Positions 4,037-45,637 of a stretch of DNA of 53,447 bases are shown in pieces. A program made the position numbers and the translations under genes. The notes beneath the pieces are model-generated. The model was not told the DNA's origin and searched no databases. It was given only the letters and a program-made list of their open reading frames with translations. This stretch comes from Macrostomum lignano (taxonomy: Eukaryota), in the NCBI GenBank assembly GCA_002269645.1, contig NIVC01000157.1, forward strand, positions 622,345 through 675,791. Reading direction: 5' to 3'. Numbering within the stretch: position 1 is the stretch's first letter; the number at the start of each line of letters is the position of its first letter.

Positions 4037-4056
4037 TTCTCAGCCACAATCCTCGT

Positions 4057-6032: not shown

Positions 6033-6106
6033 ATAAGTGGTAGCTGATCCAGAAGCCTCGCTCAGACGGAAAATAGGCTTGTTCTCGACACGAACTTTCC
6101 GAAGAA

Positions 6107-10071: not shown

Positions 10072-10212
10072 CAGAGGAGTTTGAATTTACTGACATCTTA
10101 ATCAGAATTTTGTGAAGACTGGACAAATTTTTGTAACTGCATAGATAGACAATTTTCATTAAGTGGGAGTGTTGAAAAAGTAATGTAAATTGTCTCTATG
10201 CTAATTATAGTA

Positions 10213-10725
<513 letters not shown>

Positions 10726-11100
10726 TTATAGTAACTCTCGTTAGATTCCCCAAGTCTTAGAACTTTCTAGAACGATACTGTATAAGTTTGTCTATGCCTA
10801 AAACTAAATCTATTAAATCAGCCACTGGCTTCATCCTCTCTTAACTTCCCCTTTTGCTTGTTGACTAAGAAATATACTCGATCAGCTACACTACTGCGTT
10901 TGAAAAGCCAACAGTGCTCACCGTCGCCCCATCTCCTTCTAGAATCCCAAACGGTGACGCAAGCCTCCTGACCCCCTCCTGCACCCCGATGACTCATCAC
11001 CCCCTCTTGCGCAACCTTTTCTCATGCTATTGTTCTCTTCTCAAGATTTCTCATGCGACACCCACCCCACATCCGCTTCTATTGTTCTCGTTTTTGATTC

Positions 11101-13199: not shown

Positions 13200-14271
13200 G
13201 GAGAAACTGATTTCCGCCATCATGGCGATGTACCAGGACACGACCGCTTCGGTGATGACGCCAGATGGACTGTCAGACCAATTCAGCACGTCGTCAGGCG
13301 TGCTGCAGGGTGACACTTTGGCGCCTTTTCCGTTTGTGCTGGCACTGGACTGGGTGCTGAGAACCGGCTGCCCAACCTGGATGACGGCTTCCTTTTGAGA
13401 AGACGCACGAGTCGGCGGCACCCGGAGAAGCGGCTCTCCGTTCTCGGCTACGCGGACGACCTCGCGCTACTTTCATCGACGGCTGAAGGTGCCCAGCGGC
13501 TGCTTGATGGCCTGACGGCGGCAGCGTCGCGGGTCGGCCTTAAGCTGAACGCGCGGAAGACGGTGGTGTTCACGGTGCCCTCCGACTTGCCGGCCGAGAT
13601 CAATTACCGAGACGCTGCCGGGAATGCATTTATGCTTACCCGCTGCGAGCGCTTTGTGTACCTCGGCGGTTCCGTGCCGGACGTTGCCGACGACCTGAAG
13701 AGACGACGAGGACTGGCCTGGGCCGCATTTCGATCTGTGCGCTCCGTGCTCCAATCTGAGGCCCAGGACGACGGGCTCAAGGCTCGGCTGTTTCAGACAG
13801 TCGTCGAGACTGTCCTGTTGTACAACGCCGAGACTTGGACCCTGACATACGCCTTGGAGGGGCAGCTGGACGCTGCGCATGCGGCAATGCTGCGTGCGGC
13901 TTTCGTAGTGCGCAGCGGCCCAGGCAGCGAGACCAATGCCGCGCTCTACACTAGGGCGTGCCTGACGCGGCCTTCTGACCTGCTGCGCGGGCGGCGACTT
14001 CGACTGGCTGGCCATGTCATCTGATCGGAGGCCCGCTGTCCTGAGCCGCTACACGACGTGCTGCTGCTCAAGCTGCAGGGACCGCGGAGGCGAGGCCAAG
14101 GGCGAACGGTGCGATACCCTGACTGACTTCTGAGTGACGCTGGCGCCCCGGACCAAGCAGGGGGATGCGACTTCCTGAGGGCAATGGCCCAGAGACGCGC
14201 TTTCTGACTGCTCCCCCCTTTCTGGCTACTGCGTGGCCGGCGGGAGCAGTACCTTGTTGTTGTTGTTGTTC
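13200..14271 (+). mobile_element. 5'-truncated RTE-clade-like LINE fragment
   Basis: GVLQGDTLAPF, LGYADDLALL, GLKLNARKT, FVYLG, LLYNAETW, RRLRLAGHVI motifs; (TTG)n tail at 14254-14270; possible TSD TTGAAG at 13194-13199 and 14272-14277. Confidence 0.85.
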
Positions 14272-14483: not shown

Positions 14484-14845
14484 ATGGTACGACGGCTATT
14501 GCGTGAGATGAAGAAGAGTCGGGATGAGAATAAACGACGTCAAGAAGAAAGTGCTGAATGTAGGAGAGAGAGAGACTGAGTAATTTGCGCGAAGCAGTGA
14601 AAAGGAATCGCGATGGAGAGTCAGCGGCCGTCCTGGAGGCCCGCCTTCGTGACAAAAGGCAGCGGATTGCTGACCGTCGGGCCACTGAGTCAGCGGCCGT
14701 CCGGGAGGCCCGTCTACGCGACGACAGGCAGAGGAAGGCTGACCACCGGGCTACTGAGTCCACGACCGACCGGAAGGCCCGCCTAAGCGACAAGAGGCAG
14801 CGTGAAATACACCGGGCTGAAAATTCTGCAATGCTGGTATCGTAA
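14484..14845 (+). pseudogene. Helitron N-terminal charged repeats (ES...REARL..DRQR), frameshifted in a (GA)n run
   Basis: ATG at 14484 reads MVRRLLREMKKSRDENKRRQEESAECRRER, shifts at ~14570 into ORF 14585-14845, which has 3-4 repeat units of about 22 aa. Confidence 0.55.
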
Positions 14846-17053: not shown

Positions 17054-17539
17054 CCATTGAGTTTCTCCATCTTTAACTATTTGCCTAGCATGGTCTGTTC
17101 GAAGACGCTCAATTTTTTGCTGCTTCTGCTGGTGCTGGTGCTGAAAATTTAGATGAAATAAAAGAGCAGAGAACTAAAATACTATTACTAAAATACATTA
17201 TCTACATACAGACATATACACAATACATACAACATACATTTAGTGAACTGATTACTTAAGTAATCAGTACAATATTTTGCAGTAACCTACCCGTCATCAT
17301 CATCACTTCACTAAAAACTAGAAGCTCATCTATAGCTCATAATATAATAATATAAAAATAATATAATATAAATAATATAATAATATAATAATATAATATA
17401 ACGAGTGGAACTCCTCCTCTGGAGGAGAAAGGGGAAGAACTCTCATCGCCTGAATTCCATTCCCTGAAATCCATCAGCTGAAACTCCATGACTTGAATCC
17501 CATCTTCCAAATCATCTCCAAATTCTCTGTAAAGCCTTT

Positions 17540-18595
17540 TTGCTCTCCTCTTTGCCCTCTCATCTCTACAGTGTAGTCTCTTATCTCTTCTCTCTAATCT
17601 GCTTTCCATCTCTAGTCTCTCATCTCTGCTCTCTCTTCTTTGCTATCTTATATCTAGTCTCTCCTCTCATCTCTACTCCCTTATGTATCTCTTCTCCCTC
17701 GTCTTTCGTCTGTACCCTCTCCTGTCTCTTGTCTCCTCTCTTCTCTCATATCTCTCCTCTTCACTTCTGTCTCCTGTCTCCTCTCTTCTCTCTTATCTCT
17801 CCCTCTTCTCTCCTCTCTCATATGTCATCTCTACTCACTTATCTATCGTCTCTCTTTACCCTCTCTCTCCTCTCTGCTCTCATTTCTCATATCTCATATA
17901 CGCTCTCACACTCTACTTTCTTGTCTCCCATCTTTCTTTCCTCCTTTCCACTATCCCCTGTCTCTTCTCTTCTCTCTTTTCTCCTCTCCTTTTTCCTTTC
18001 ATCTTCTCCCCTCTCTTCTCTAATCTCTAATCTCTTCTCTCTTATGTTCTCACGCATCTCTTCTCATCGCATCTCTCATCTCTCCTCTCCTCACTACTTT
18101 CCTCTCTTAACTCTCTCATCTCTGATCTTTCATCTCTCTCCTCTCTCCTCTCTCTCTTCTCCTTTAGCTTCTCTCTCCTCTCATCTCTACTACCTTATTT
18201 ATATCCTCTCCCTGGTCTTTCGTCTCTACTCTCTCCTGTCTCCTTTCTCCCCTCTTTTCTCCTCTCTTCTCTCTCATGTCTTCCCTCCTCTCTCATCCCT
18301 CATCCCCTCATCTCACTCTTTCTTTCTCCTCTACTCTCCAATCTCTTCTATTTCCTCTGTACGCTCTTATCCCTCATCTACTCTCTCTCTCTCCTATTAT
18401 CTCTCTTGTATCCCTTTGCTATCTCATATCTCCCCTCTCATCTCCTCTCTCCTCTTCTCTTCTCTCTCCTTCGTTCCCGCCTTACTCCCCTCTTCTCTCT
18501 GATCTGTCATGTCTAATCTCTCCACTCATTTCTACTCTCTTTTCTACCCACTCATCTCTTTACTCTTTTCATTCTTGTCTTTACTCTCTTCTCTG
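17540..18595. repeat. CT-rich low-complexity tract
   Basis: Degenerate (CT)n/(TCTC) sequence; homologous tract at 20070-21025. Confidence 0.9.
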
Positions 18596-18599
18596 ACTG

Positions 18600-18925
18600 T
18601 TTGAAGATTCCAAATCCATCAAGATCCTCTCCGCGAAGCAGAAATCCTGTCCGTGAAGCTGAAAACCATCGAAATCTACTCCGTGAAACTGGACTCCTTC
18701 AAAATCCTCTCCTTGAAACTTAAATCCATCAAAATCGTCTCCATAAAACAGAAATCAATCAAAAATTATCTCCGCGAAACAGAAATCCTCTCCGTGAAGC
18801 TGAACATCATCAAAATCCTCTCCGTGAAACTAAGCACCATCGAAAGCCTCTCCACGAAAAAAAAATTCTCTCCGTCAAAATTAAAACATTGAAATCGTCT
18901 CCGCTAAACTGGACTCAATCGAATT
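18600..18925 (+). repeat. Degenerate ~30-bp tandem repeat (ATCGAAATCCTCTCCGTGAAACTG-like)
   Basis: Recurrent AAATCCTCTCCGTGAA core; second array at 21030-21325. Confidence 0.8.
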
Positions 18926-18960
18926 TTTTCCGTCAAACAACTCAACTCTCTGGATTCATT

Positions 18961-18984
18961 GGTTAGGGTTAGGGTTAGGGTTAG
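18961..18984 (+). repeat. Interstitial telomeric repeat, (TTAGGG)~4
   Basis: GGTTAGGGTTAGGGTTAGGGTTAG read directly. Confidence 0.9.
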
Positions 18985-20069
18985 AACTACGCACAGCTTC
19001 GTGTTAAAAGGCACTGATAAAAATATTGAACTAATTGAATCAATTCATTGCGCAACCGATTTCACAGTCAGTCAGTATCAGTCTCAGTTAAAGTTAACAA
19101 AAACATTGCGCAATCTAATTGAACCCTCCAATACACAGCAGCAGTGAGAAGTTGAACCCTCCCCCCAACTTTATCTATTACGTCTCGCAAAACTAAGTAC
19201 AATCTTTGCAGAAAGTTAAAAGTATGGAAATAGTTTTTCAAATGCTGTGCTTTTTCTTTTCATATATAAAGCAAACAACTTATATCCCCGAACTCAGCGT
19301 TGCAAGATCTTTCCAGCAATATAAGTTTCTCCTCTCAAAGTTTAAAACTCGAGGAACAGTTAGCGTTTGAAATTTACCGATTTCCCGACTGCTTGCTTGA
19401 GAAGCTCGCAATTCATTGAATTTCACTGCCAAGCTAATACACAGGGCTGCCTATGGAGAAAAAAAGGCGCCAATAAAAAACCAATTGAATTTCGACACAG
19501 TCTATCTATTTACACTGTACAACTGCTATGTACACTCAGCCCAAGCCCTACCCCCGTTCTGGGGGAAGCAATTTAACTGAACCCCCCAACACGCGGGGGG
19601 TTTTATTTGCATTGAACCCAGAACACGCGCACCCACCACCCCTCAATACACAGCGGCCCGCGGGCGGAGGTTGGGGTGGCTATTTTTACAAACTGGCTGC
19701 AGCCCCAGGCAGAGTGACCAAAGAAGGTTATTGGGGGTTAAAAAAACAGTTTTCTGCTTTTTAAGGGATGTTAAAATGTGAAAATTAAAAATTAAAATAG
19801 CCTAAAGCCTGCTCCGGAAAATTTGCAGTTTTCCCATATAAGTTTCGACGCTGACTTGCCAGTATTGTAGGAGTTCACTTGCAACAGACAGACACACAAA
19901 CATCGCGTCAGTTTTAGTATTAGGACGAGTGGAACTCCTCCTCTGGAGGAGAAAGGGGAAGAACTCCCATCACCGGAATTCTGAAGGGGAAGAACTCCTA
20001 TCAGCTGCAATTCCATGAATTGAATCCCATCTTCCAAATCATCTCCAAATCCTCTACAATCTATCAACT

Positions 20070-21025
20070 CCCATCTCTCATCTCTTGCGCCCTGCGCTCT
20101 GATTTTTATTTTTACTCTCTTCTTTCTCCTCACTAATTACTCATCTCTAAACTTTCATCTCTCTCATCTATGATCTTTCATCTCTCTTCTCCCTCCTCTC
20201 TCCCTTCTCTCGCTTCTCTCTCTACTCTATTCCTACTCTTCTCGCTTATCTCTTCTCTCTCATATCTCATTTCTACTCACTTATCTATTGTCTCCGCTCT
20301 ACTTTCTCTCTTCCCTTTTCTCTCTTCTCTCTGCTCTCATTTCTCGTATCTCTTATACGCCCTCACCCTCTCCTTTCTTATCTACCATCTTTCTTCCCTA
20401 CTTTCTACTGCATCACCTGTCTCCTCGCCTCTCTTTTCTCTCCTCTCCATTCTCTCTTCTTTCCTCTCATCTCCCCTCATCTCTTCTCTAATCTCGAATC
20501 TTTCCTCCCTCATATCTCTTCTCTACTCACTTATCTATTCTCTCTCCTCTGCTCCCCTTTTACACTTTCCTATATGCTCCCACTCTCACCCTCTCCTTTC
20601 TTATCTCCTGTTTTTTTACACTCCTTTCTACCACCTGTCTCCTCGTTTCTCTCCTCTCTGCACTCTCATCTTTACCCTCTTCTTTCTCCTCACTACTTTC
20701 TTCTTTTAAATCTCTGATCTCTGATCTTTCATCTCTCTCCTCTCACCTCTCACCTCTCTCCTCTCTTTCCTCTCTTTTATTGCCTCTGTACGCTCTTATC
20801 CCTCTTTTCTTCTCTCTCCTGTCTCCTCTCTGCTATCTCATATCTCCTCTCTCCTATCCTCTCCCTTCATCTCCTCTCTCATCTTCTCTTCTCTCTCCTT
20901 CGTTGCCGCCTTACTCCCCTCTTCTCTCCGATCTGTCATGTCTAATCTCTCCACTCATTTCTACTCTGTTTTCTATCATCTCATCTCTCTTCTCTTTTCA
21001 TTCTTCTCTTTACTCTCTTCTCTGA
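20070..21025. repeat. CT-rich low-complexity tract (second copy)
   Basis: Shares blocks with 17540-18595, e.g. CCTTACTCCCCTCTTCTCT...GATCTGTCATGTCTAATCTCTCCACTCATTTCTACTCT. Confidence 0.9.
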
Positions 21026-21029
21026 CTGA

Positions 21030-21325
21030 TTGAAGATGCCAAATCCATCAAGATCCTATCCGCGAAGCAGAAAAATCCTGTCCGTGCAACTGAAGACCAT
21101 CGAAATCCTCTCCGTGAAACTGGACTCCTTCGAAATCCTCTCTTTGAAACTTAAATCCATCAAAATCGTCTCCATAAAACAGAAATCAATCATAAATTAT
21201 CTCCGCGAAACAGAAATCCTCTCCGTGAAACTGAACATCATCGAAATCCTCTCCACGAAACAGAAATCCTCTCCGTCAAAAAACATTAAAACATTGAAAT
21301 CGTCTCCGCTAAACTGGACTCAATC
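21030..21325 (+). repeat. Degenerate ~30-bp tandem repeat (second array)
   Basis: Paralog of 18600-18925. Confidence 0.8.
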
Positions 21326-21365
21326 GAATTTTTTCCATCAAACAACTCAACTCTCTGGATTCATT

Positions 21366-21389
21366 GGTTAGGGTTAGGGTTAGGGTTAG
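21366..21389 (+). repeat. Interstitial telomeric repeat, (TTAGGG)~4
   Basis: Identical 24-mer to 18961-18984. Confidence 0.9.
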
Positions 21390-22443
21390 AACTACGCACA
21401 GCTTCGTGTTAAAAGGCACTGATAAAAATATTGAACTAATTGAATCAATTCATTGCGCAACCGATTTCCCAGTCAGTCAGTATCAGTCTCAGTTAAAGTT
21501 AACAAAAACATTGTGCAATCTAAATCAACCCTCCAATACACAGCAGCAGGGAGAAGTTGAACCCTCCCCCCAACTTTATCTATTACGTCTCGCAAAACTG
21601 AGTACAATTTTTGCAGAAAGTTAAAAGTATGGAAATAATTTTTTAAATGCTGTGCTTTTTCTTTTCATATATAAAGCAAACAACTTATTTCCCCGAACTC
21701 AGCATTGCAAGATCTTTCCAGCAATATAAGTTTCTCCTCTCAAAGTTTAAAACTCGAGGAACAGTTAGCGTTTGAAATTTACCGATTTCCCAACTGCTTG
21801 CTAGAGAAGCTCGCAAGTTTATTCATTGAATTTCACTGCCAAACTAATACACAGGGCTGCCCATGGAGAAAAAAGGCGCCAATAATAAAACCAATTGAAT
21901 CTCGACACAGTCCTGACTCCTATCTATCTGTTTACACTGTACAACTGCTATGTACACTCAGCCCAAGCCCAACCCCCCGTTCTGGGGGAAGCATTAAATT
22001 TAACTGAACCCCCCCCCCCTTAACACGCGGGGGGTTTTATTTCCACTCGCACCCACCACCCCTCAATACACAGCGGCCCGCGGGCGGAGGTTGGGGTGGC
22101 TATTTTTACAAACTGGCTGCAGCCCCAGGCAGAGTGGCCAAAGAAGGTTATTGGGGGTTAAAAAAGCAGTTTTCTGCTTTTTTAGGGATGTTAAAATGTG
22201 AAAATCAAAAATTAAAATAGCCTAAAGCCTGCTCCGGAAAATTTGCAGTTTTCCCATATAAGTTTCAACGCTGACTTGGCAGAATTGTAGGAGTTCACTT
22301 GCTACATACATACATACATACAGACAGACAAACATCGCTAGAGTTTTAGTATTAGGACTAAAGCCTGCTCCGGAAAATTTGCAGTTTTCCCATATAAGTT
22401 TCAACGCTGACTTGGCAGAATTGTAGGAGTTCACTTACAACAT

Positions 22444-22474
<31 letters not shown>

Positions 22475-24438
22475 TCGCGTCAGTTTTAGTATTAGGAAAG
22501 AGAAGAGAAGAGAAGAAAGAAAGATATAAAATATAAAAAAAGCTCATAATATAAATATAGCTCATCTATATTCTATCGCCCCTTTCCCCACTCACAAATC
22601 CAACGACGGCCATATCAACGTATATATTAATAAACGCTATAAAAATCCTATAAATAGCATTTCGCCTCCATCGTTCTTTCCCGTACTAATAAAAAACGCC
22701 ATATCATAAAATCAGCGTTCATACAAACTTTCTTATATATTATTTTTTACTCATTACACCTGGCCTGCAGCAAGCGGCCAGAGTTGCAGCCATTGGCACA
22801 GTCGTAGCTTTCTGTGTGCAGTGCACAATGCGTCTGAGGGCTGTGTATAGATGAATAGTCTTCCATTGACTGAGGGAGCCGCCACACCCACTTAGAGTTA
22901 ATTGATCGGTATGGTATGTTAACATCTTGTATTAGACAGATTAGAGGTATAATACAATTGAACGAGAAATTCGGAACCTGTAAAGGACCATAGCAAAACT
23001 CAATTGTAGAGGGGCCTTTTGGTTAAGGCTTTTTGCTTCCAATTTACTGTAACTATACAGTACTCCGCAAGGTATTCTACTGGATGGGAGATGGGTAGAT
23101 CGGACACCCGGAGGGTGGGGATACCGCCTAGTTGTATTCTAATGTCTTGAATATTAAGTAACATCGGCTTGATCCGTTTGAGTCTAATAATTACTTTAAT
23201 TTGCATAAAATATTAGGTAGCTAGTATTGCAAGCTCAGTTTGAAGTTACTATGATTGGTATTTTTCTAAGTCGCATAAATAGGCTACGGAGCCGTTACGT
23301 GTTCAGTCTGCAAAATACTCATTAAATAAAGTTACATTCATTTATCGTCAAATATATCCGACATCTCTTCAGAATAAATCTAACTCCTACTGGTTGTACG
23401 TCGCTTCAAGTCGAATTGCATTTATTAATATCTATCTATTCATCTATCTATCTATCCAAGAGCACAAATCTGACGCTGAAAATCTGCTGCTATGCCGTTG
23501 ACTACCACACAGGGACAGCTGTTGCAAATTTGCGATCCGATAACCAGCTACATGGTGATTCGCCTGTTAGTGCCAGCACCGAATTCACAGTTTGTAATGA
23601 CACGAGTGCGCGGTGTGATACAGTGATCGTTCTTCGAGAGTTTTGCTAAGCTGTTTTTTTCTGACGCGCCGAAACTTATCTCATGCTCATGTTGTGAAAC
23701 GGGCTGGGGCCCGTGCCATAGATTTAACAGTAGAAAGACCATGGGGGTGTATTTCAAATACACATATTTTTCTTTTGTCTGAATCTCCGAAAATATTCAA
23801 CCAATTGCCATCGAAATCCAGAACACATGCTAAAATTTTCCGCTCTATTCGATGAAGCAACTCCGAGAATCACGAAAAATCGGCATCGTCGAGATATTCA
23901 ACGATTCTGCTCGGGGTGTCCGGTGGCAAAAACTACCAACATTGGCAAATTTTTTCTGTTCACAAAATCTCATCATGAAACCACGTCGGCTCAGAAAACT
24001 ATGCATATCAGTCGTAAAGGCCTTTCTTCTCAGCATCCCAGGAACCAGGGTCCCCTTCATCACTGTCTGGAGCATCGGCGGCGACCGTCTGGACCTTCAA
24101 CAAAAGCACCCGATCGGCATCGCAGAGACGGCTGCGTCCCCAAAACTGAAATGGAAGAATCCTCTTCTGCATGCAGCATTCAGTTAGCAGACATAATCGG
24201 TGAATGAAATGGACGATGGCGACCCTCTAGGTTGACCTGTAGACATACAAGCGACCTTCGGGACCTTCAACGGAGTGCCACCAGGCGGCCCCGACTAGCT
24301 GGCACCCCCAACATCGTGATTTTTCTGTCAAGGCACCAAACCAGGCATGTCTGCATGTTATACAATGCTTTTGCACCGTGTTAAATTGGAGAGTTACATA
24401 TTTAACTGGCGACTGAAAAATATAAAATATATTTAATT

Positions 24439-24614
24439 TGTCAAAAATGATATTACAGCATGTCAAAAATGATATTACAGCATGTCAAAAATGATATTAC
24501 AGCATGTCAAAAATGATATTACAGCATATCAAAAAGGATACTACAGCATGTCAAAAATGATATTACAGCATGCCAAAAATGATATTACGGCATGTCAAAA
24601 ATGATATTACAGCA
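24439..24614 (+). repeat. 8 x 22-bp tandem repeat TGTCAAAAATGATATTACAGCA
   Basis: Counted directly; 3 inverted copies at 32037-32102. Confidence 0.95.
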
Positions 24615-24678
24615 AATTCAAAGCAGAAGGATCTGAACACTGACACATAGACACAAAGGCTGAGTCAATTGTCACTAT

Positions 24679-26435
24679 TTAATTTGGTGCACAACGTGGG
24701 CAGTAATGGTGACTCACTGTCTCTTCCATTGCAGTGTGTCTTCGGCAAATTCCTTCGTCACACATGCAACACTTCCTTGTTGTCGCACTCAAGGCACGCT
24801 TCTCATCCTTTGACTTTTGTCTCACACATGTTGCACAGCACTTTCTGCCACCAACTGACACCACAGCCGCCGCTTCGCGTGCCTGTTCCTTCATTTGCTC
24901 GTCGTTGATTCGACAACCTGCGAGCTGGAACATCAGCCTGTGATGATTGGACAGATTTTGAAGAAGAGCGGCCGATTGCGAGCGCTCCTCGATCAGAGGT
25001 TGCAGAAGTTGCGCAGCTGCCTTGCGCTGGAACTCGTTGCGATAGTTCGGCGAGGCGCAGAGCTCCGGGTGCGCCAGTCTCCAGATAGCAGCGGCATTCA
25101 CAATTGCTATGTTGAGTGTGCCGCCGGATAAGATTGCCTTCTCGCATGTGTCGGACTTTCGCTTGTAGTCGGATGTGCGGAACAACCTGTTGCAGGTGTC
25201 CGTGCCACTCCTGGTAGAATTGTAGTACGAGTCTATTGCTACAGGCTTGCCATTGGGAAGCAATTGTCTGTAGTGATGCATGGTGGACAGCAACATCACG
25301 TTTCGGCGCGCTTTGGGGCAGTAGGACACACACGTGAGCTCCTCAGAAAACCGGAATTCGCTCGTGTGTGGAGCCATGGTTTGAGCTGAAATCTTGAGAT
25401 CGGCTGGCAGGCCACCACAGGTGCGCATCACTGTTCCAAAAAACGTGAATCCCATTTCTCGGTACAAGTGATTGGCCAGAGCAGGACTCGAGAAGAATCT
25501 GTCACATGTGATGCGGTACCAGTGTCCTCTGAATGTATCAGCCAAGCGGCAAACAACTTGCTCACCACTCCACACCTCTGAGCCCTTGGCTAGCCGAGCA
25601 TCGGATTCCTGTGATGCAAAAGTAGTGGACAGCAGTGTTCCTTTGCCAGTGCAGATTTCCGCATTGAACACATAGCGGATGTCCATGTCATCCTGAATCT
25701 CTGGATTCCCAGCCGATGTCAGCAGGAACAGCTTGGCACCATTGCGACCGGGCTTCTCCCTCAGAAAGACCGTGAAGTCACAGTCCATACCCCAGTAGAC
25801 AATCAGAGTTTTGTCGACGCAGAGGTACGGCCCGGGAAGGACAGGATGGCGAAGCTGACTGACAAAGGTGTCCCACAAGCGTCGGATGCCGTAGAGCTTG
25901 TCTGTTGCGGCAGTCCGCTGACGATGTTCGGCAGTTTCGAAGCACAGGTTGCGCCAAAGTAGTTGAAATTGATTTCGGCTGAACGCACACTGCAGCAGTG
26001 GATGATAGCCAGAATTCACATCAGTGCTCCACAAGTCTATCAGGGCGACATTGCGCAGATCGTTGGCTCCGCTGTACAGTAGAGCACCGATTAGCCCCTC
26101 AATCTCCATTCTGCTTGCTAGCTCAGCTGAGTCTCCACTTGTTGAGCTGATGTTCTCATTCGTTGCAGCTGTGATCAAATCCAGCATGGGGTCATCGAAG
26201 AAGCCCATCAGTGTGCCGCTCTCCGTTTCAGCGCACTCCTTCCAATTAATGCGTGGATTCAGTTCGTCTGTCAACCGAGGAACACAGTCACTAGCCCATC
26301 GTCTTGGATGTGGGGGGACTTGGGACCAGTTGATTGGGTCATGAGAAATGTCGAACAGATTTTTATTTCATCTGGACCACTCTTATCCGGAGAAAACTCT
26401 TCATCCAAATCGCTGTCAGCAAGAGCCTCTGCCAT
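24679..26435 (-). pseudogene. piggyBac/PGBD-type DDD transposase with C-terminal Cys-rich domain; probable 1-bp frameshift near 26365
   Basis: LCVD, ITCDRFFSS and YYNSTRSGTD correspond to the DDD triad; C-terminus has CCATC...CCMC...ICRRH...CPRC. The frame is open from 26367; an acidic N-terminus MAEALADSDLDEEF starts at ATG 26435 in another frame. Confidence 0.88.
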
Positions 26436-26916
26436 TCAAAAGCAGGAGAATTTGATTCTACTGGATGGATGTGTTGCGAGTTTGGACGAGAAACAGAATT
26501 TATAAGAAATTTATCCAAGCAGCAACAGTTTCCGGCAGGTGCGAGAGATTTAGCAAAGCTAAGCTGAATAGTATCAGAAAGATTAAATTATTTAAATTAA
26601 TGGGTCCAGCGGACACGTGCGTCAGAATGGAAGTTAAGACGAAGTGATGGTATACCTGCAGGGGTAATCTAGCAAATCAGGATTGAGAGTCGTGAGTTTA
26701 ATAATCTTAGTAACCCCCCACCCCCTCCAGTGACCGTCCGCCTGTGGCTAAACCCCCTAGTAACAGTTGCCCCCCCGCTCCAGATACAGTAAACTCAGCA
26801 AGAGGGATGAAATTTCCAAGCTTCAATAGATTATTCGTCGTTACCAGCGGTGGAACATACATATAATCCCGCCATAAAAGCATGCGTGTGCGTCCCACGG
26901 TGAAATCAGTACATAC

Positions 26917-29900
26917 TGATATGGATTTTAACTGTGAACTTTTACGCATGCGATTGAACTATCTATGGTCATCATTGTCGAAGACCCAGACAGTTACTAA
27001 AGAGCTGGGCGCACTAGGGAAAATGGAATTAACTAACGAACGAGCGGAGCGGGACAAGGGCTCCTACGATAACGAATTATTTCCGCTCCTTTTTGTTAAC
27101 ACAAATATACGATTAGACGGAACGAGCCGTCTTGCGAATACACATCAATTGACGACGAGGACTAACAACCCATGGCCCCACCAACATCGCCTCGAAACCG
27201 ACATCAGCGGCAGCAGCTACAAATGCCCAGAATATTCGTGTGTCGATACCACAACCATCAAAATTTCTGGAGCTACCAGGCGAACCACCAGTCAAGTGGA
27301 CTATCTGGCAGAAGGAAGTCACCGACTTCTTTTTCCTCACTGAGACTACGACCGGGGCACTACTAACAGATGACTTCAAAAAGGCATTCCTGCGCACGTC
27401 CCTGGGCTCAGAAGGAAGACGTATCCTGTACGCGCACAACCTCCAGGACGATAAGGCTAGCAGCCTGGAAGAATATATGGGCAAGCTGAAGTTAATATTC
27501 AGCAAAAGCCAAAACCCAGTCCGTGCAGAGTACGAATTCCGCAAGCGAAAGCAGGAGCACGGTGAGTCCATCAGTGACTATTTCACAGCCCTGCGAACAC
27601 TAATTACGGACTGTGAGTACGGCGCTGGAGAAGATAGGCAGCTTGCAATGCAACTGGTGATTGGATGTGCGTCTAAAAGCACACAAGAGAAACTGTTGAA
27701 CCAACACACTATTGACCTGCAGTCTTTTCTGACCACCATGCGAGCTGATGAGTCTGCGTCACTTACTGGCGAAATCATCAGGAGCAATGCAATGGCGCCA
27801 ATTCAACAAGTACACAAGCGCACATCTGCGAAGTCCGACCAGCGCAAAAGCACGGCCTCGGCGATCCCTGCAGCAACCAGAACAAGGGGAACAAGAAACA
27901 GCAATGTATGGGCTGCGGTTCAAATTCACATGCCTACAAAGATGCTAAATGTCCGGCCCTCGGAAAGCTGTGCAAAGGATGCGGCAAGCCAAACCATTTT
28001 GCCTCCCATTGCATAATATCACAACGAAGGGCCAACACCGTAAAGAAAGTACGCGCAATCAAAAGGCACGTTCGATCAGTTGGCCAGAGTGAAACACCAT
28101 CGGTTGAAGTTACAGCTGTCGGCAGGAATGGAACTTACGCGGCATTGCTGGACACGGCTGCTGAAGTTTCGACTCTTCGACATGCAGACTTGAAGCGCAT
28201 CTGGCCAGATAAGGACATCCACCCAGCGACACTGACACTACGAAACTACGACAACAGTGCGATATCGGACATAATTGGCCACATCACGGCAGAGATAGGC
28301 ATTTTAAATCGAACAACCAACGCCAGACTATTTGTCACGAAGAACAGTCTACAGTCTATCGTCAGAATGGACCTGATAAAAGTTCTGGGACTGAAGTTCG
28401 ACGGAGCTTCGATGCAAATTTCAACCAATGCCGGACAAAGTTGTGACATTATAGACGAGTTCCCTCAACTATCAGAGGAATCACTGGGTACCTATCCAGA
28501 CTACACGCATAACATAACTCTTCAAAAGGACGCTACCCCAAAGTATATTCCCACGCGGACCATTCCGCTGGCTCGTCGTGAGGCTGCAATCAGTGAGATC
28601 AAGAAGATGGAGGAAATGAGGATCTGGAGTCCTGTTGAGAAAAGTTAATGGGCCAATGCACTCGTCACTGTGTGGAAAGCAGACGGTGGCATCCGGATAA
28701 CAACGGACTTTTCGTATCTGAACAAATTCGTAATCCCAGACCGACACCCTATACCGAACATCAGCGAACTCTTCCTGAAGTTGAATGGGGCTTGTTACAA
28801 ATCAAAGATCGACCTAAAGCGAGCGTACTTTCACATCAAACTCGACAAAGAGAGCAAACTATTGACAACAACAACGACACCAATTGGACTGTATGCCTAC
28901 AATCGACTACCGATGGGTCTGGTGGACTCCGCGTCTGTTTTTCAACGATGTGTAAGCAGCACACTCGGCGACTGCGAACAAACAATAGCATATATCGACG
29001 ATATCCTGGTGTTTGGACAAACGATCAAGAAGCACGACGATGAGCTCCGCAAAGACCTCAAACTACTTCACGAAAAGGACTTTTGCATCAACACCACGAA
29101 GTCTATGTTTCGCCGCGAGAGCGTACCGTTTTTGGGCTACATTATAAATGAGAAAGGACGAATCGAGTCAGACCCCGATAAGCTCTCGGCGATCAAGAAC
29201 ACACCGGCACCAAAAAACCAGACAGAGCTACGGTCTTTCTTAGGCATGATTGACTATCACTCAAACTTTGTGAGAGACCTAGCGACGATCACTGAGCCGC
29301 TGAGACGCCTAACACGACAGAACCAAAAGTTTATCTGGGGAAGCGAGCAACAATCGGCCTTTGACCGCGTAAAGCGAATACTTAAGGAACGACTGGAACT
29401 GGCCATTTTCGATCCTAACCTGCCCACGATCTTGACAACCGACGCTTCAGATGTCGGCATCGGTGCTGTTTTTTCACAAACGCAAGCCGAAACAGAGGTT
29501 CCAATAGCATCTGCATCCCATGCACTTTCCGAGCGGGAACAAAACTCCGCTGTGAACGAGCGCGAAGCACTTGCCTGCGTCTGGGCATGTGAACACTTGG
29601 CAAAATATTTGCTGGGACGACATTTCACTTTACAAACAGATCATTCTGCACTAACGAGCCTCCTACGACACCATAGTAACAAGACGAAGTCAGCAAAATT
29701 CACACGTTGGTTGGTTCGGCTGTCCGAATTCGACTACGACATAGTCTACAAGCCCGGAAGCACCAACTACGTGGCTGACGCCCTATCCAGACTACCAGTC
29801 GTCGATGGACTGGACAGTGCGGATAACGAAGACGATGCTACTATCCGCAGCATTCTGCTCCCAAACGATATTGACACCCCTTCTGCAAGAAACCTGCAGA

Positions 29901-31390
29901 AGCTAACGAGCACAGATACCATACTACAGGAGGTTTTGAAGGCTGTCAAAAGCTCCCGAATAATTGATAAAAAGAAGACAGAGCTCAAGGCCTTTGCACA
30001 GATTCAAGACGAACTGACGATAGAAAACGGAATCCTGATCCGTGGTGAACAAATCGTGCCGCCCAGCAGCCTAGTCAAGACAATCCTGAAGCGTGCCCAT
30101 GAAGGACACCCGGGAACGTAGGAATGAAAAGACTTCTGCGATCGGCATACTGGTGGCCAGGTATGGATAGCGCCATAACGAACTATGTCAAGTTCTGTCT
30201 ACCATGCCAGTACAGTGCTAAGTCGCACAAAATTATCGTGCCAAACGGTGGATCGGTTGAAAAGCCTGACCGACTCTGGTCAAAGCTCGCGATTGACATC
30301 ACCGGGCCGTTTGCAATCGCTCTACAAAATCAACGATTCATTGTCGCGCTCATCGATTACTATTCGTCATATCCCGAGATCCTTCTCACTGGAGACACGA
30401 GATCACCAAGACTAATCCACTGGCTGACAGAGGTTTTTAATTGCTTCAGCAATCCTGATACCCTGGTATCTGACAACGGAAACAACTTTGTCTCCAGAGA
30501 AATGGAGGACTTTCTCGCTTCACGAGATATCCGTCACGAATGTGTCCCCCTGTATGAGCCAAGACGAAACGGCAAGGTGGAAGTCTTCAATCGAACGCTG
30601 AAGCATGCGGCACAAACCTTCGAGGTTGAGCGGAAGAGTTTCGAAGACGGCATACAACAGACTATATTCAGCTACCAAACAACGCCGGATGAGAACGGAG
30701 ACACCCGCAAAACTGCTATTTGGCCGCGACAAAAGAGAAAATTTCCAACCTCGCAGAACAACCAAGGCCAATGAAACACAGAACGAGCTAGTGACCACAT
30801 TAAAACAGGAATCGCACCAAGTATTCAAGCGACACTTCAAGGTCGGTGATCTGGTACGTGTTCGTTTGCCTCATGTGCCATAGGGCAGGTCCCCTTTCAC
30901 CTCTCCATTCAAAGTAATCAAAGTGGTTGGCGACTTCAAATACCGATTGGACAATGGAAAGGTTTGGACTGCGCACAACTTGGTACCATTCAGACAACAA
31001 GCGATAGATCCAGTCGAGATACAGTCAAGTGGAGCGCGCCAACATCAACAGCATGTCTGTCGGTCTAAAAGACAAAACAAAGGAATGCCACCTAAGCGAC
31101 TGATTGAGGAAGTATGAACAATCAATTGGAGAGTGCACTATTTAAGGAGGGCGGAAGTTGATATGGATTTTAACTGTGAACTTTTTACGCATGTGATTGA
31201 ACTATCTATGGTCATAATTCTCGAAGACCCAGACAATTACTAAAGAGCTGGGCGCACTAGGGAAAATGGAATTAACTAACGAACGAGCGGAGCGAGACAA
31301 GGGCTCCTACGATAACGAATTATTTCCGCTCCTTTTTGTTAACACAAATATACGATCAGACGGAACGAGCCGTCTTCCGAATACACATCA
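26917..31390 (+). mobile_element. Ty3/Gypsy LTR retrotransposon (C), full length and degenerate, nested in the piggyBac-like element
   Basis: LTRs TGATATGG...CACATCA at 26917-27147 and 31159-31390; TSD CATAC at 26912-26916 and 31391-31395; PBS-like TGACGACGAGGA; PPT AAGGAGGGCGGAAG. Confidence 0.96.
27240..31117 (+). pseudogene. Gypsy C gag-pol with frameshifts and stops (28646-28648, 30119-30121)
   Basis: Gag; CMGC/CKGC knuckles; LLDTAAEV protease; RLPMGL and YIDDILV RT; TTDASDVGIG and EREALA RNase H; HEGHPG...YWWPGM...C..C, IDITGP, SDNG, NGKVE integrase. Confidence 0.93.
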
Positions 31391-31612
31391 CATACCTTTG
31401 TAGGCACTATATATAAATAATTACAGAACTTTCAGAGCAGTCATCGCGAAGCCCTCAGGCTCGGGAATCAAGAAAGAATAACCGCCTAGAATAAAGGGGA
31501 ACACAACGAGGCGAGAGATTGCACTGTTACAAAAACCAGCACATCTTTAGTTCTTCAGTCTTTCCGGAATCTTGCTAAAATCCCATTCACAAACCGATTG
31601 CGTCTTTACACA

Positions 31613-31954
31613 ATGGCAGTCACTGAGGCGCAACTGTTGCACAGATATCTCACAGAAAATGGAGCCACAGACAACGACGCCAAGGGCTTCATTTCCTGGT
31701 GCGAGCGCTACAGAAATTGCAAGAGCAAGGCTGGCAGACATGATGCGTACACAATCTGGGCCCGATATCTAAAGCGATTTGGTAAGCAGGAACATTTCAT
31801 CGTCATGCAGTTTAACTACCCAGAAGAAATCAAGCGCTACTTGCGAAGTGTTACCGGTGGAGAGGTTGTGGATTCAGCCCCACCTGCGGTCCACGAGAAC
31901 ATCACGGCTGAACAGTTCATTCGCCTGGTCATTCGGAAGCTTCGAAGAACATAA
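31613..31954 (+). CDS. Orphan 113-aa protein of unknown function, divergent from the piggyBac transposase
   Basis: Uninterrupted ATG-TAA ORF (ACAATGG context) with globular-looking composition, inside the TTAA element and not antisense to another gene. Confidence 0.55.
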   Translation: MAVTEAQLLHRYLTENGATDNDAKGFISWCERYRNCKSKAGRHDAYTIWARYLKRFGKQEHFIVMQFNYPEEIKRYLRSVTGGEVVDSAPPAVHENITAEQFIRLVIRKLRRT

Positions 31955-32036
31955 CTCGGTGATTTGCTATAATTGATTTAAGTAGATAACTTCACCGTTG
32001 CAAAGTTGCCTCTACCCAGGTGTATCATCTTTGACA

Positions 32037-32102
32037 TGCTGTAATATCATTTTTGACATGCTGTAATATCATTTTTGACATGCTGCAATATCATTTTTGA
32101 CA
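32037..32102 (-). repeat. 3 x 22-bp tandem repeat (inverse of 24439-24614)
   Basis: TGCTGTAATATCATTTTTGACA x3, plus a partial copy at 32031-32036. Confidence 0.95.
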
Positions 32103-32999
32103 AATTAAATATATTTTATATTTTTCAGTCGCCAGTTAAATATGTAACTCTCCAATTTAACACGGTGCAAAAGCATTGTATAACATGCAGACATGCCTGG
32201 TTTGGTGCCTTGACAGAAAAATCACGATGTTGGGGGTGCCAGCTAGTCGGGCCGCGTGGTGGCACTCCGTTGAAGGTCCCAAAGGTCGCTTGTATGTCTA
32301 CAGGTCAACCTAGAGGTTCGCCGGCGTCCATTTCATTCACCGATTATGTCTACTGACTGAATGCTGCATGCAGAAGAGGATTCTTCCATTTCAGTTTTGG
32401 GGACGCAGCCGTCTCTGCGATGCCGATCGGGTGCTTTTGTTGAAGGTCCAGACGGTCGCCGCCGATGCTCCAGACAGTGATGAAGGGGACCCTGGTTCCT
32501 GGGATGCTGAGAAGAAAGGCCTCTCCGACAGATGGAGCCAGATTATTGAGCCAATTTGGATTCACCATAAAGGTTTATACGGTGTAGTGTTGGTTGTCCT
32601 TGCCACCAGTTTCTTCGACAAGGATCGTTGAATATCTCGATGATGCTGACGTCGGATGACGTTGAAAGTTAATCGTTAAAAAGGGGGGATTTTGATCTAA
32701 ATGGTGGACTTTTACGAAAATCGGTTATTCGGTTTGCGAGCTATGGTGAAATTGGTTGTGTGTATTTGTACTACACCCCCATGGTCTTTCCCCATAGGGA
32801 AAATAGCGTGGTCTTTCTACTGTTAAGAGCAAAGAGTGAGAAGTTAGGAGTCAGGAGGGCTCCTAGCAAGGAGTGAATCGATTTTTTGTGCTATAGAGTT
32901 CAAGAATCAAGAGTTAGGAGCAAGAAGTTGTTCCAAGGATAGGAGTGAGGAGTTCTAAGGAGTGTAAGGTGATTCGCTAAGGAGTCTGTCAATCTGTCG

Positions 33000-43110: not shown

Positions 43111-45637
43111 TTAGGCTGCCTGGTAATACTCAGGAGTCTTGACAGCTCGGCCACGCATAGTCCGATAAGGCCCATCTCGCTGCACGGCGGCTGGCTGCAT
43201 GGAGGCCGGCTGCATGGAGGCCGGCTGCATGGAGGCCGGCTGCACGGAGGCCAGCTGCATGGAGGCCGGCTGCATGGAGGCTGGCTGCATGGAGGTCGGC
43301 TGCACGGAGGCCGGCTGACAATCTCCCTGCTCGTCCTCTTCGCTGCTCTGTTGGAATTCACCGACTGTCACACCAATCTTCCGAGGCCTGATGAAGCGGC
43401 GGTTCCGTCTGAGCAACTGTCCAGTCTCAGCGAATGCGAGAACTCCCCAAGGTCGTACTGGGTTCGAACTATCAATCTCAGCTGCCACCCACTCGCGACG
43501 ACCGCGTTGTAACCACACCAGATCACCAGCTGCTAGCTTCTGCAACGGTCGAGCTCGGCGATTGTACAGTTGCGCTGCTCTAATGCGCTCTTTTTCAAAA
43601 GGCTCAATGCAGGAGTGAAGATGAATTTTCTTTGGCCGCAAGTCCTTGACAGTCGCTGGCAGGTCACATCGAAGCTTACGGCCGAAAGCCATCTCCGCCG
43701 GGCTTGGAAAGCCGCTGCCGACCGGAGTGTTGCGGTAGTGAAGCAGTGACAACTCCAGACTTTGGCCTGTCTCGGAGCATTTCTTCAACATGTTTTTAGC
43801 TGTCTGTACGTAGCGCTCAGCTCTCCCGTTCGACTACGGGTACGTTGGACTCGAGGTTCGGTGCTCCGAATTCAGCCATTGTCTGTCGAAACTCGCGAGC
43901 AGAAAACTGCGGGCCTCCATCACTGACTAGCTTCTCTGGCACTCCAAAGCTTTGAAAATGATCCCGTATCGCACTCGCGACAGCCAAGCTTGTGGCTGAT
44001 CTCATCCGTGTGACCCTCATCCAGCAGCTGTAGGAGTCAACGTACACCAAGTAGGATCCACCAGTGAACTCAAATAGGTCAGTCGAACAGACTTGGAACG
44101 GAAAATCCGGCATATTCACAGACATCAGCGCGACACGACTGGCACGACTCGCATTCACTAACGACCTGCTCTACGCAGTTCTGCATTCCTGGCCAGTAGA
44201 AATAGTCCTTGGCCTTCAAGTCCATTTTCACGATGCCAGGGTGCCCCGCATGTAGAATTTTGAGCACTGATTTCCGGGCGTGGCCGTTTGGGACATAGAT
44301 ACGGTCCTTCAGGCATAGAAGACCGGAGGCATACGTCAAGTCATTTCGAATATCCCAAAAAGGCTTCAGATCATCTGAAAACTTTGACCGATGCTCTGGC
44401 CAACCCTCCTGGATGACAGTTCGCAAACGCTCACTAGTCACATCTGCTGTCGCAGTCTTCATCATCTGCAAGATTTCTCGATTACCACTAAAGCAGCGTT
44501 CCACCGATAAAACTTGGCCGTCAAGCGCAGTCTCAAGCTGAATAGTGAGAAGATCAGCTGCACCGTGAGCTCGACTTAAAGTGTCGGCTACATAAAGGTC
44601 TTTGCCGGGCGTGTACTTCACGCGGATGTCATAAGGCTGAAACTGAAGCAGGAGTCGCTGAATTCGAGGAGTAGTGACGCACAAAGCCTTTTTTAAGATC
44701 GATTCAAGTGGCTTGTGATCGCTTTGCACTTGCACCGTACGACCCCAGATATAACGATGGAATTTTTTGCAACCATAGACGATGGCCAAAAGCTCCTTCT
44801 TAATCTGCGCGTACGCGCGCTGAGCACTTGTCATAGCCGAAGACGCGTATTCGACGGGGCGATCCTCTCGAAGAAGCACTGCGCCGATGCCGCTCTTGCT
44901 TGCATCAACTGAGACTGTGACAGGCTTGTTGGTGTCAAACGTGGCTAACACTCGGCTTGAGCATAGTTCCGCGACGATCTCATCACAAGCTTGGTCGTGT
45001 TGATCCACCCAGCTCCATATAACCTCTTTCTTCAGCAGGTGTCTCAGTGGCTCTGCAGTGGCAGACAAGTGTGGGCAGAATCTGGCCAAGTACGTGACGC
45101 AGCCAAGAAACCGCCTCAGCTGTTCTTTCTTTGCTGTCACGCCTTCAAGAGAATCGGGTCTTGCCATCTCTTTGATCGCTTTAACCTTCTGGGGATCAGC
45201 CCTCAGTCCATCAGGTCCGAGAATGTCCCCTGAATAGCTTAGCTCTGGGACTCCAACTTTCACCTTGCTGGGATTCAGCGTCACGTTTGCACGCTTGCAC
45301 TGCTCCATTAGCTGGCGCACCGCCGTATTGTGCTCCTCGATCGTGCGTCCCCACAAAATAATATCATCGAAGAAGTTTTTTGCGTTTTCCACATGGCTGG
45401 TAACATTTTCTTACATGCGTTTCTGAAACACTTCTGGGATCGAAGATAGGCCATACGGCACACGCTTCCACCTGTATCGACCAAACGGAGTGTGGAAAGT
45501 GGTAAGAGACAAACTCTTCTCATCTAGCTTAAGCTGGTGAAAGCTCTCCTTTGCGTCGAATGTGCTAAATACAGCGGCTCCAGCAGTTGCCATGCGGACC
45601 TCCTCAGCTGTTGGGATTGGGTGATATTGTACGGGAA
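43111..45637 (-). pseudogene. Gypsy E pol (RT, RNase H, integrase), frameshifted
   Basis: HPIPTAEEV, PYGLSS, FFDDIILWG, VSVDASKSGIG, HAGHPG...YWPGM, SDGGPQF, LLHYRNTP motifs in ORFs 45411-45593, 44079-45392, 43817-44158 and 43111-43791. Confidence 0.92.
43179..43313 (-). repeat. 9 x 15-bp in-frame repeat encoding (QPASM)n in the integrase tail
   Basis: GCTGCATGGAGGCCG unit counted directly. Confidence 0.95.

Follow-up and report, generated by a model that had tools for sequence, protein, structure and literature searches.

A piggyBac-superfamily transposon with compound inverted arms and a second open reading frame in Macrostomum lignano

Introduction

What kind of mobile element carries a piggyBac-type transposase, a second open reading frame (ORF2) head to head with it and inverted arms of nearly 0.9 kb? 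The question is raised by a locus within a 53,447-nt stretch of Macrostomum lignano DNA (hereafter the window), for which a preliminary description made from the sequence alone had proposed a possibly undescribed piggyBac lineage. piggyBac is among the main tools of transgenesis and gene therapy, and how active it is depends on end architecture. How long subterminal sequence affects transposition is a question that has been raised for piggyBat (PMC11707139). Here we ask to which superfamily the element belongs, how its arms are built and whether ORF2 is part of it.

Results

The element spans positions 23728-32822 of the window. As the preliminary description had it, a copy of the target site TTAA lies on either flank, at 23724-23727 (read directly) and 32823-32826. 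The left terminal inverted repeat (TIR), CAGTAGAAAGACCA (23728-23741, plus strand), returns as its reverse complement at 32809-32822 (minus strand); the terminal match starting with CAG that had been put at 13 bp is there, and is perfect for 14 nt. In opening with CAG the TIR keeps the first C, which is conserved in the piggyBac superfamily (PMC5381638), CCC or CACTA being commoner starts than CAG among PBLEs (PMC5381638, PMC10813416). On the left, the TIR is followed after 5 nt by a 17-nt perfect palindrome, GTGTATTTCAAATACAC (23747-23763; nt 20-36 of the element), giving a tip of 36 nt. On the right, 32 nt separate the TIR from an imperfect palindrome, GTGTAGTACAAATACAC in minus-strand reading (32760-32776; nt 47-63 from the right end), giving a tip of 63 nt. 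This asymmetry is due to a 27-nt insertion present at the right end only (32782-32808), which holds a second GAAAGACCA. By analogy, the left palindrome is a putative site for a dimer of the Cys-rich domain of the transposase.

The transposase gene, of about 585 codons, lies on the minus strand (24679-26435, ATG at 26435) and includes an ORF of 531 codons (24679-26274). This ORF matches the Pfam domain DDE_Tnp_1_7 (PF13843; E = 3.9e-42, 145 bits, cutoff 22.4) and the PDB structure 6x67 of piggyBac from Trichoplusia ni (T. ni; E = 4.6e-30), which bears out the piggyBac type first assigned to it. The DDD triad is intact, with D154, D258 and D359 (codons 25813-25815, 25501-25503 and 25198-25200, minus strand) aligning with T. 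ni D268, D346 and D447. The Cys-rich tail (24691-24837, minus strand) reads C480-x2-C483 ... C502-x2-C505-x4-C510-x2-H513 ... C525-x2-C528 and gave no zinc-ribbon match in Pfam. The gene is not one clean ORF: the ATG at 26435 is out of frame with the 531 codons. The shift, of 1 nt, falls within or close to 26355-26367, at or near an A5 run (26360-26364), and could instead be a homopolymer sequencing error.

Among 1.84 billion representative proteins, the nearest relative is P0001 (41% identity, E = 1.2e-91), a singleton cluster and a 580-aa transposase encoded on Logan contig SRR31628394_512287 (L001). All other matches reach about 37% identity or less, those listed falling between 26 and 37%. 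P0001 resembles the transposase studied here in its N-terminal MA..L..DSD start (MAAALIEDSD in P0001), in the motif PHPRRW, which in the window lies upstream of the 531-codon ORF, and in the Cys/His tail, which is invariant between the two; it differs in that its ORF is uninterrupted. The MAAALIEDSD start and PHPRRW of this uninterrupted relative fix the true start of the transposase at 26435 and show that the interruption is a frameshift and not an intron. These sequence comparisons support the view that the transposase represents a poorly sampled lineage, for which about 15 billion predicted proteins include one known relative; in its superfamily and its poor sampling, the lineage proposed earlier stands.

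The TTAA duplication and the presence of a second ORF would also suit Kolobok, another superfamily that targets TTAA, and the layout had indeed been likened to it. Kolobok elements have their own type of DDE transposase, usually with a THAP domain. Here, PF13843 was the sole domain found in a Pfam scan of the transposase, with no THAP match, the DDD triad is conserved with that of T. ni piggyBac, and all 2695 matches among the representatives were obtained in a search for which this piggyBac-type transposase was the seed. The PF13843 match and the 6x67 alignment refute membership in Kolobok, to which we give practically no credence, and with it the comparison of layouts falls. Judged from its sequence, the element is a genuine cut-and-paste transposon of the piggyBac superfamily.

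Between the two genes sits a degraded Ty3/Gypsy LTR retrotransposon of 4474 nt (26917-31390, plus strand), flanked by the 5-nt target-site duplication (TSD) CATAC (26912-26916 on the left, 31391-31395 on the right). Its LTRs of 231/232 nt (26917-27147 and 31159-31390) are 97.0% identical and run TG..CA, and its genes follow the order gag, protease region, RT-RNaseH and integrase, with the domains RVT_1, RT_RNaseH, Integrase_H2C2 and rve in succession; such LTRs, a short TSD and the order PR-RT-RNaseH-INT are the marks of Ty3/Gypsy. Three lesions interrupt its pol: an in-frame stop (28646-28648) and two frame changes, one near 30121 and one between 30605 and 30774. Subtracting the insert and one TSD copy (4479 nt) leaves, as had been calculated, an element of 4616 nt in which the two ATGs, 26435 on the minus strand and 31613 on the plus strand, are 698 nt apart. 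Both ORFs run outwards from this central region into the arms. The left part of the inter-ATG region (26436-26916) contains an AT-rich, TATA-like stretch (26582-26601), and the right part (31396-31612) contains TATATATAAATA (31408-31419), 12 nt off the retrotransposon insertion point; either part may have a promoter role.

The left arm measures 889 nt (23728-24616) and consists of the terminal 45 nt, a diverged middle (23773-24017), a near-identical inner part (24018-24438) and a tandem array of eight 22-nt copies of TGTCAAAAATGATATTACAGCA (24439-24614). The right arm measures 801 nt (32022-32822) and comprises, from the inside outwards, 3.6 copies of the 22-nt unit (32023-32102), an ATTAAA, the inner duplication (32103-32522), a diverged middle (32523-32758) and the terminal part. 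Lengths of 0.8-0.9 kb and a compound build had been noted before and hold, yet the arms are far from uniform: the outermost ~45 nt are conserved, identity is only 61% over the ~245 nt that follow, and it reaches 98% over the inner ~420 nt (98.3% between 24018-24438 and 32103-32522). Inner duplication and array together make up about 600 nt per arm. In the left inner duplication a 21-nt motif occurs twice (24081-24101 and 24251-24271). The 22-nt repeats include TGTAATATCA, similar to the palindrome half-site TGTATTTCA, and could thus be extra binding sites for the transposase.

Identity steps sharply from 61% to 98% about 290 nt inside each end, and the inner part must therefore differ in history from the tips. 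This step, together with tandem arrays reminiscent of foldback arms, would fit arms that are a separate foldback or MITE-like element around a piggyBac transposase gene, or a one-off rearrangement of a single copy that made an inverted duplication. The tips, however, are cognate piggyBac ends: they have TTAA and the TAGAAAGA core, and their palindromes are spaced much as in T. ni. Neither a target-site duplication nor TTAA borders the inner duplication, and the arm sequence has no other copy in the 53-kb window. Foldback elements carry tandem subrepeats up to their termini and a 9-nt TSD; here the 22-nt units are confined to the inner arm ends, leaving tips of unique sequence, and TTAA is the TSD, so that a foldback element was rejected. 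We consider a separate origin or one-off rearrangement of the arms improbable. The working ends look like ordinary short asymmetric piggyBac ends, the long, near-identical part being an inner inverted duplication added to them. Chimeric long reads can also yield long inverted repeats, and a palindromic chimera in the assembly might produce false arms. Such an artefact is very improbable here: the outer 290 nt are not alike in the two arms, which also have different repeat numbers (8 versus 3.6 units) and 7 substitutions between them, two different genes occupy the centre, and a clean TTAA duplication frames the element.

ORF2 runs on the plus strand from the ATG at 31613 to a stop at 31954, head to head with the transposase gene as first described, and encodes a protein of 113 aa (13.3 kDa, pI 9.5) that is predicted to be all-helical. 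With a codon table drawn from the transposable-element genes of the same window, ORF2 scores 0.26 bit per codon in log-odds and ranks first among the 55 ORFs of the window (z about 4, P about 1e-4 against stop-free random sequence). The signal is uniform along the ORF, the other five frames are all negative, and ORF2 is as coding-like as the Pfam-supported genes of the window. The start context, ACAATGG, is good, and the stops are placed in mirror image, that of ORF2 about 67 nt and that of the transposase about 62 nt off the arm. An ATTAAA occupies the same position within the arm downstream of either ORF (24437-24432 on the minus strand, in the left inner duplication; 32104-32109 in the right arm). 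An identical 3' end for the two transcripts, supplied by the inverted duplication, is therefore probable, each ORF reaching this same ATTAAA immediately beyond the array.

Against these features must be weighed the possibility that the element is an ordinary piggyBac with one gene, in which the subterminal inverted repeats happen to be long, and that ORF2 is private to this copy: an ORF due to chance, the remnant of a decayed one or a captured host gene fragment, with no role in transposition. The length of ORF2 is within chance (P about 0.1 from shuffles). No homologue was found among billions of proteins, no match in Pfam or the PDB (DUF7254, at 16 bits, stayed below its cutoff of 27) and no detectable Myb domain, and the structure model, of low confidence (pLDDT 54), matched no fold. 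In published surveys, piggyBacs are reported to have single ORFs (PMC10813416), and the transposase is the sole gene with a domain match on the contigs of the relatives P0004, P0007 and P0009 (2.3-3.5 kb). The 3.6-kb contig L001 shows no ORF2 homologue, TTAA-flanked ends or long inverted repeat, its 632 nt upstream of the gene being too short for a comparison of layout. The coding-like codon usage throughout, the good ATG context and the mirror-image stops speak against a private ORF. Pure chance is unlikely because codon usage is coding-like along the whole of ORF2, with which a captured fragment is still compatible. The one-gene reading thus remains a serious contender, at somewhat below even chances, while we lean towards ORF2 being a real coding sequence. 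A family-wide role for it, as an accessory or regulatory protein, is possible but less likely than not.

Discussion

The combination of features at this locus cannot be due to chance. With good confidence, we interpret the element as an autonomous-type piggyBac DNA transposon that inserted recently, is now crippled and belongs to a thinly sampled branch of its superfamily. It is known from a single copy; no other was found in the window, nor in metagenome, viral or prokaryote-genome collections. On the model of the T. ni structures, the transposase would act as a dimer, cutting at the tips via TTAA hairpins and reinserting at TTAA, with the Cys-rich domains binding the palindromes. The Ty3/Gypsy element, inserted between the start codons of the two ORFs, disables the present copy, and the 1-nt frameshift in the N-terminus of the transposase possibly does so too.

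A bolder proposal is a two-gene piggyBac lineage, in which ORF2, small, basic and helical, would play the part of the second protein of PIF/Harbinger as a conserved accessory or regulatory transposition factor, expressed divergently with the transposase from a shared central promoter and sharing with it an inverted-duplicated 3' region, while the 22-nt arrays would bind ORF2 or the transposase. We regard this full scheme as doubtful; no report of such a piggyBac layout was found in the literature searched. Should ORF2 prove to be a conserved accessory gene, its product would, as far as we know, be the first small helper protein in the piggyBac superfamily; if it is private to this copy, the element is a well-preserved, otherwise ordinary long-TIR piggyBac. 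With canonical tips like LE35 and RE63, very long extra inverted repeats and candidate binding-site arrays, it offers a natural test case for whether such sequence stimulates or restrains transposition.

Among the closest known systems is T. ni piggyBac (IFP2; PDB 6x67/6x68), with which the element shares the TTAA target, the DDD triad and asymmetric ends, in which the palindrome occupies about nt 17-36 at the short end and extends to nt 63 at the long one; the Cys-rich tail would correspond to the C-terminal Cys-rich domain of T. ni piggyBac. The core TAGAAAGA is common to the T. ni TIR, CCCTAGAAAGATA, and to CAGTAGAAAGACCA. LE35 of T. ni has a 19-bp palindromic repeat at bp 17-33 (PMC7351741), a location that the left palindrome of our element matches, and the distance of the right palindrome equals that in RE63 (PMC7351741, PMC5381638). 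Local alignment identity between the two transposons is low, comparable to the range of the other listed matches. The TIR starts with CAG here and with CCC in T. ni, the short end is on the downstream side of the transposase gene, not on the upstream side as in T. ni, and the length is 4.6 kb as against 2.5 kb; the inverted duplication, the 22-nt arrays and the second ORF are additional.

Long ends are known from other PBLEs. Subterminal inverted repeats of up to 400 bp were described by Bouallègue et al. 2017 (PMC5381638), whose structural groups SG2 and SG4 have long ends, PiggyBac-2_Cvir of Crassostrea virginica has a 528-bp TIR (PMC10813416), and bee piggyBac elements have TIRs of about 200-490 bp (PMC10140906). 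These share with our element a short TIR, long imperfect subterminal inverted and direct repeats and, mostly, TTAA. The arms described here are longer than any in the three surveys and, unlike those, compound, with an old, diverged outer and a near-identical inner portion; the elements in PMC10813416 have single ORFs, whereas ours has two. The lineage and the architecture are new, but long-TIR piggyBacs as such have already been published (up to 528 bp), and the suggestion that long ends are new for piggyBac has to be given up.

PIF/Harbinger elements, of a different superfamily, have two genes, a 3-nt TSD and a Myb/SANT-like second protein. The analogy is functional only, a DDE-type transposase and a small second protein occurring in one element, and ORF2 differs from that Myb/SANT-like protein in its lack of a detectable Myb domain. 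Finally, Teratorn, a piggyBac-herpesvirus fusion of teleosts with internal long inverted repeats (PMC6431247), likewise has a piggyBac-type transposase that moves extra genes and long inverted repeats inside. Teratorn, however, carries a whole viral gene set in 41-182 kb, compared with one orphan ORF in the 4.6-kb element of M. lignano.

Structure of the element

The element at 23728-32822 is a well-preserved piggyBac that belongs to a rarely sampled branch. Its tips are canonical and asymmetric, and to them an unusually long inverted duplication with repeat arrays has been added; a Gypsy element inserted later, and the second ORF is an orphan. TTAA flanks it on both sides (23724-23727 and 32823-32826), and directly inside each TTAA lies a perfect inverted repeat, CAGTAGAAAGACCA. 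This repeat is 14 nt long, against the 13-bp terminal match counted in the preliminary description. Repeat detection and pairwise alignment delimit two inverted arms, the left one 889 nt long (23728-24616) and the right one 801 nt (32022-32822). Between the arms we find the transposase ORF on the minus strand (24679-26274, 531 codons), a nested LTR element of 4474 nt (26917-31390) and, on the plus strand, a second ORF of 113 codons (ATG at 31613, stop at 31952-31954), hereafter ORF2. The TTAA flanks, the inverted arms of ~0.8-0.9 kb, the piggyBac transposase and the head-to-head second ORF that had been read from the sequence alone were all recovered, and the earlier arithmetic is exact: removing the 4474 nt plus the 5-nt CATAC leaves a Gypsy-free element of 4616 nt, with the two ATGs 698 nt apart. 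In its TTAA flanks, its transposase core with a DDD triad, its TIRs beginning with C and its asymmetric, palindrome-bearing ends the element agrees with piggyBac. A Kolobok-type layout and foldback-like arms had also been proposed, and by the features that define membership of these groups the element is neither a Kolobok nor a foldback element.

The nested element is flanked by a 5-nt target site duplication, CATAC (26912-26916 and 31391-31395), and its TG..CA LTRs measure 231 and 232 nt. Its domains (gag-like, RVT_1, RT_RNaseH, Integrase_H2C2 and rve) follow the Ty3/Gypsy order, and its pol is broken by an in-frame stop (28646-28648), by a frame change near 30121 and by another between 30605 and 30774. 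The insertion point lies 12 nt from a TATA-like motif upstream of ORF2. The insertion splits the central region and is likely to have silenced both genes or to have uncoupled them.

The transposase and its relatives

The 531-codon ORF matches Pfam DDE_Tnp_1_7 (E = 3.9e-42) and the T. ni piggyBac transposase of known structure (6x67; E = 4.6e-30), and alignment to the latter places D154, D258 and D359 on the catalytic D268, D346 and D447. Its C-terminus has the pattern C-x2-C ... C-x2-C-x4-C-x2-H ... C-x2-C, which is invariant with P0001, the closest transposase relative; it marks a candidate Cys-rich DNA-binding domain, in which Pfam detected no zinc ribbon. The first codon of the ORF is TTG, and the true start is likely the ATG at 26435 (MAEALADSDLDEEF...), which lies in a different frame. 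P0001 is an uninterrupted protein of 580 aa with the N-terminus MAAALIEDSD, and it carries the motif PHPRRWPSDFVQRL, found in the window in the main frame upstream of the TTG. With tblastn the main frame extends to 26355, and the window copy therefore holds a 1-nt frameshift between ~26355 and 26367, at or beside the A5 run at 26360-26364. A conserved intron at the break was ruled out, since P0001 stays colinear there and its frame runs on without a gap; a homopolymer sequencing error may be an alternative source of the 1-nt shift. With the frameshift read through, the transposase would be ~585 aa long.

How isolated this transposase is was best seen when 1.84 billion cluster representatives were scanned in full with HMMER (E <= 1e-3), which returned 2695 matches. 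Only P0001 was close (41% identity, E = 1.2e-91); the runner-up had an E-value of 1.9e-44 and none of the other matches listed exceeded 37% identity, in line with a poorly sampled lineage. P0001 forms a singleton cluster and was found on one 3.6-kb Logan contig (SRR31628394_512287), where its intact ORF spans 633-2375. Neither TTAA-flanked ends, nor a long inverted repeat, nor an ORF2 homologue occurs on this contig, whose 632 nt upstream of the gene are too short to settle the element layout. The gene may belong to a longer element that the assembly truncated, or it may have been domesticated. Three more distant relatives (~29-32% identity) reside on contigs of 2.3-3.5 kb with the transposase as the sole domain-matched gene, which is the usual compact form. 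A word-indexed protein search gave no matches for the transposase or for the transposase-P0001 alignment; this is a weak negative because the 2695 relatives in the same collection, P0001 among them, went unreturned, and the HMMER scan is the reliable search of the two.

No second copy of the element was found in the window or in the metagenome, viral and prokaryote-genome collections, and scans of these collections for related loci returned nothing. Exact look-ups of the window proteins, with several start choices, gave no match. The terminal 20-mer had two metagenome matches (L002 and L003), which share nothing beyond the 20-mer and were set aside as chance, and no matches in the other collections.

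Terminal ends and compound arms

In T. ni piggyBac the left end reads CCCTAGAAAGATA-GTC-TGCGTAAAATTGACGCATG and comprises a 13-nt TIR, 3 nt and a 19-nt palindromic repeat at bp 17-33, to which the Cys-rich domain binds as a dimer; at the right end 63 bp are needed, and asymmetry of the ends is required in cells (PMC7351741; PMC5381638). The left end of our element consists of the 14-nt TIR, 5 nt and a perfect 17-nt palindrome, GTGTATTTCAAATACAC (nt 20-36), while at the right end the TIR is followed by 32 nt with a second GAAAGACCA and then by GTGTAGTACAAATACAC (nt 47-63). Given that this layout of TIR, spacer and palindrome matches T. ni, as does the shared TIR core TAGAAAGA, the working ends look like ordinary short asymmetric piggyBac ends. 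The gene is flipped relative to T. ni, with the short end downstream of the transposase.

Inward from the tips the arms split into three zones. The outermost 45 nt are conserved, the middle zone (23773-24017 vs 32523-32758) is only 61% alike, and the inner zone (24018-24438 vs 32103-32522) is 98.3% identical, its 421/420 nt differing by 7 mismatches and a single 1-nt gap. Divergence between the inner arms does not exceed that between the two LTRs of the nested element (97.0% identity, 7/231), which fits a scenario in which the inner arms were essentially identical when this copy inserted. In the parent element the inner part would have arisen by a recent inverted duplication, or gene conversion would have kept it uniform. 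Beyond the inner zone lie tandem arrays of a 22-nt unit, TGTCAAAAATGATATTACAGCA, the left array with 8 copies and the right one with 3.6. The unit includes TGTAATATCA, close to the palindrome half-site TGTATTTCA, and we infer that the arrays are putative additional binding sites. Transposons commonly carry subterminal site arrays, the effect of which can be stimulating or restraining (PMC11707139). Transposase remnants in the arms were ruled out (blastx E > 0.4), and the arm ORFs 23827-24207 and 23852-24187, with codon scores near zero or low, were taken as non-coding.

The second open reading frame

The length of ORF2 is unremarkable: when the parts of the element outside the transposase are shuffled, ~10% of trials yield an ORF as long as 113 codons, and other ORFs of 111-126 codons are present in the element. 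Its composition, on the other hand, stands out, and the coding signal is real. We built a codon log-odds table from nine window ORFs (eight pass the Pfam gathering threshold, and one is a gag ORF whose matches fall below it), with the five remaining frames of these ORFs as background. At 0.26 bit per codon, ORF2 ranks first among 55 window ATG-ORFs of 90-250 codons and exceeds the leave-one-out scores of the reference genes (0.11-0.21). The score is uniform along its length (0.22-0.36 in 30-codon windows), is negative in all five alternative frames, and exceeds that of stop-free random sequence with matched base composition by ~4 standard deviations (P ~1e-4).

The setting of ORF2 mirrors that of the transposase. 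Its stop lies ~67 nt before the right arm and that of the transposase ~62 nt before the left arm; both outward-running frames reach ATTAAA at the equal arm position (32104, plus strand; 24437, minus strand), and TATA-like stretches stand ~155-205 nt upstream of each ATG. The ATG of ORF2 has the context ACAATGG. These features are read from the sequence, and their functions are putative.

Several results speak against a conserved gene. The word-indexed search found no homologue, a weak negative in view of its failure to return P0001 for the transposase; a Pfam hit to DUF7254 is taken as chance (16 bits vs a cutoff of 27), and the matches among PDB sequences had E near 1. A single-sequence AlphaFold model has five helices at low confidence (pLDDT 54), and Foldseek found no match to it in PDB below E = 2.4. 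A diverged piece of the transposase was ruled out, as no relation between the two was detected. On balance we favour, with some reserve, a coding function for ORF2, at present or until recently; an accessory role throughout the family is possible but less likely than not.

Genomic surroundings

The surrounding window is eukaryotic-looking and transposon-rich, with Copia and Gypsy genes; tRNA and Rfam scans of it gave no matches. A Copia-type LTR retrotransposon (5805-10914) is bounded by direct repeats (5805-6003 and 10716-10914, 97-99% identical). One break splits its coding region into an ORF at 6107-8737, which covers gag, a zinc knuckle, integrase and the beginning of RVT_2, and another at 8818-10011 with the remainder of RVT_2. 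On the minus strand, a second Gypsy-like element (46458-50889) has 95-nt direct repeats (46458-46552 and 50795-50889, 98% identical) and fragmented ORFs for gag/protease (49479-50780) and RNaseH (47877-48611). Also on the minus strand (43111-45392), an RT-RNaseH-integrase fragment (44079-45392) adjoins an ORF at 43111-43791 that holds 8 copies of a 15-nt tandem repeat (43164-43332) and has only a weak, sub-threshold, keratin-B2-like Pfam match.

At 17500-22500 a ~2.4 kb unit is duplicated in tandem, with blocks of 88-98% identity between the two copies; each unit opens with a very CT-rich low-complexity stretch (GC skew to -0.8), and the pair stops ~1.25 kb left of the piggyBac. Nested direct-repeat pairs at 780-5295 (780-852 with 5223-5295, and 1882-1979 with 4068-4165) enclose a GC-rich block (56-59% GC) with a 239-aa minus-strand ORF (2955-3674) for which Pfam gave no match; the whole may represent a further nested repeat element. 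Finally, a 69-nt unit is repeated three times in tandem at 14618-14824, with 64-83% identity to the first of the copies; the array lies just downstream of a fragment of a reverse transcriptase (13395-14024).

Comparison with published piggyBacs

In the literature searched we found no description of a small accessory ORF or second gene in a piggyBac. Teratorn is a fusion, and quite different in scale from our element. Long inverted ends have already been published for piggyBac. Subterminal repeats of 11-400 bp, as well as combined structures of TIRs, direct repeats and subterminal repeats, are described for piggyBacs (PMC5381638); an oyster piggyBac has a 528-bp TIR, in a survey reporting single ORFs (PMC10813416), and bee piggyBacs have TIRs of ~200-490 bp (PMC10140906). 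The arms of our element exceed every length given in these three surveys and are clearly of two ages, yet they are the same kind of feature as the published long ends.
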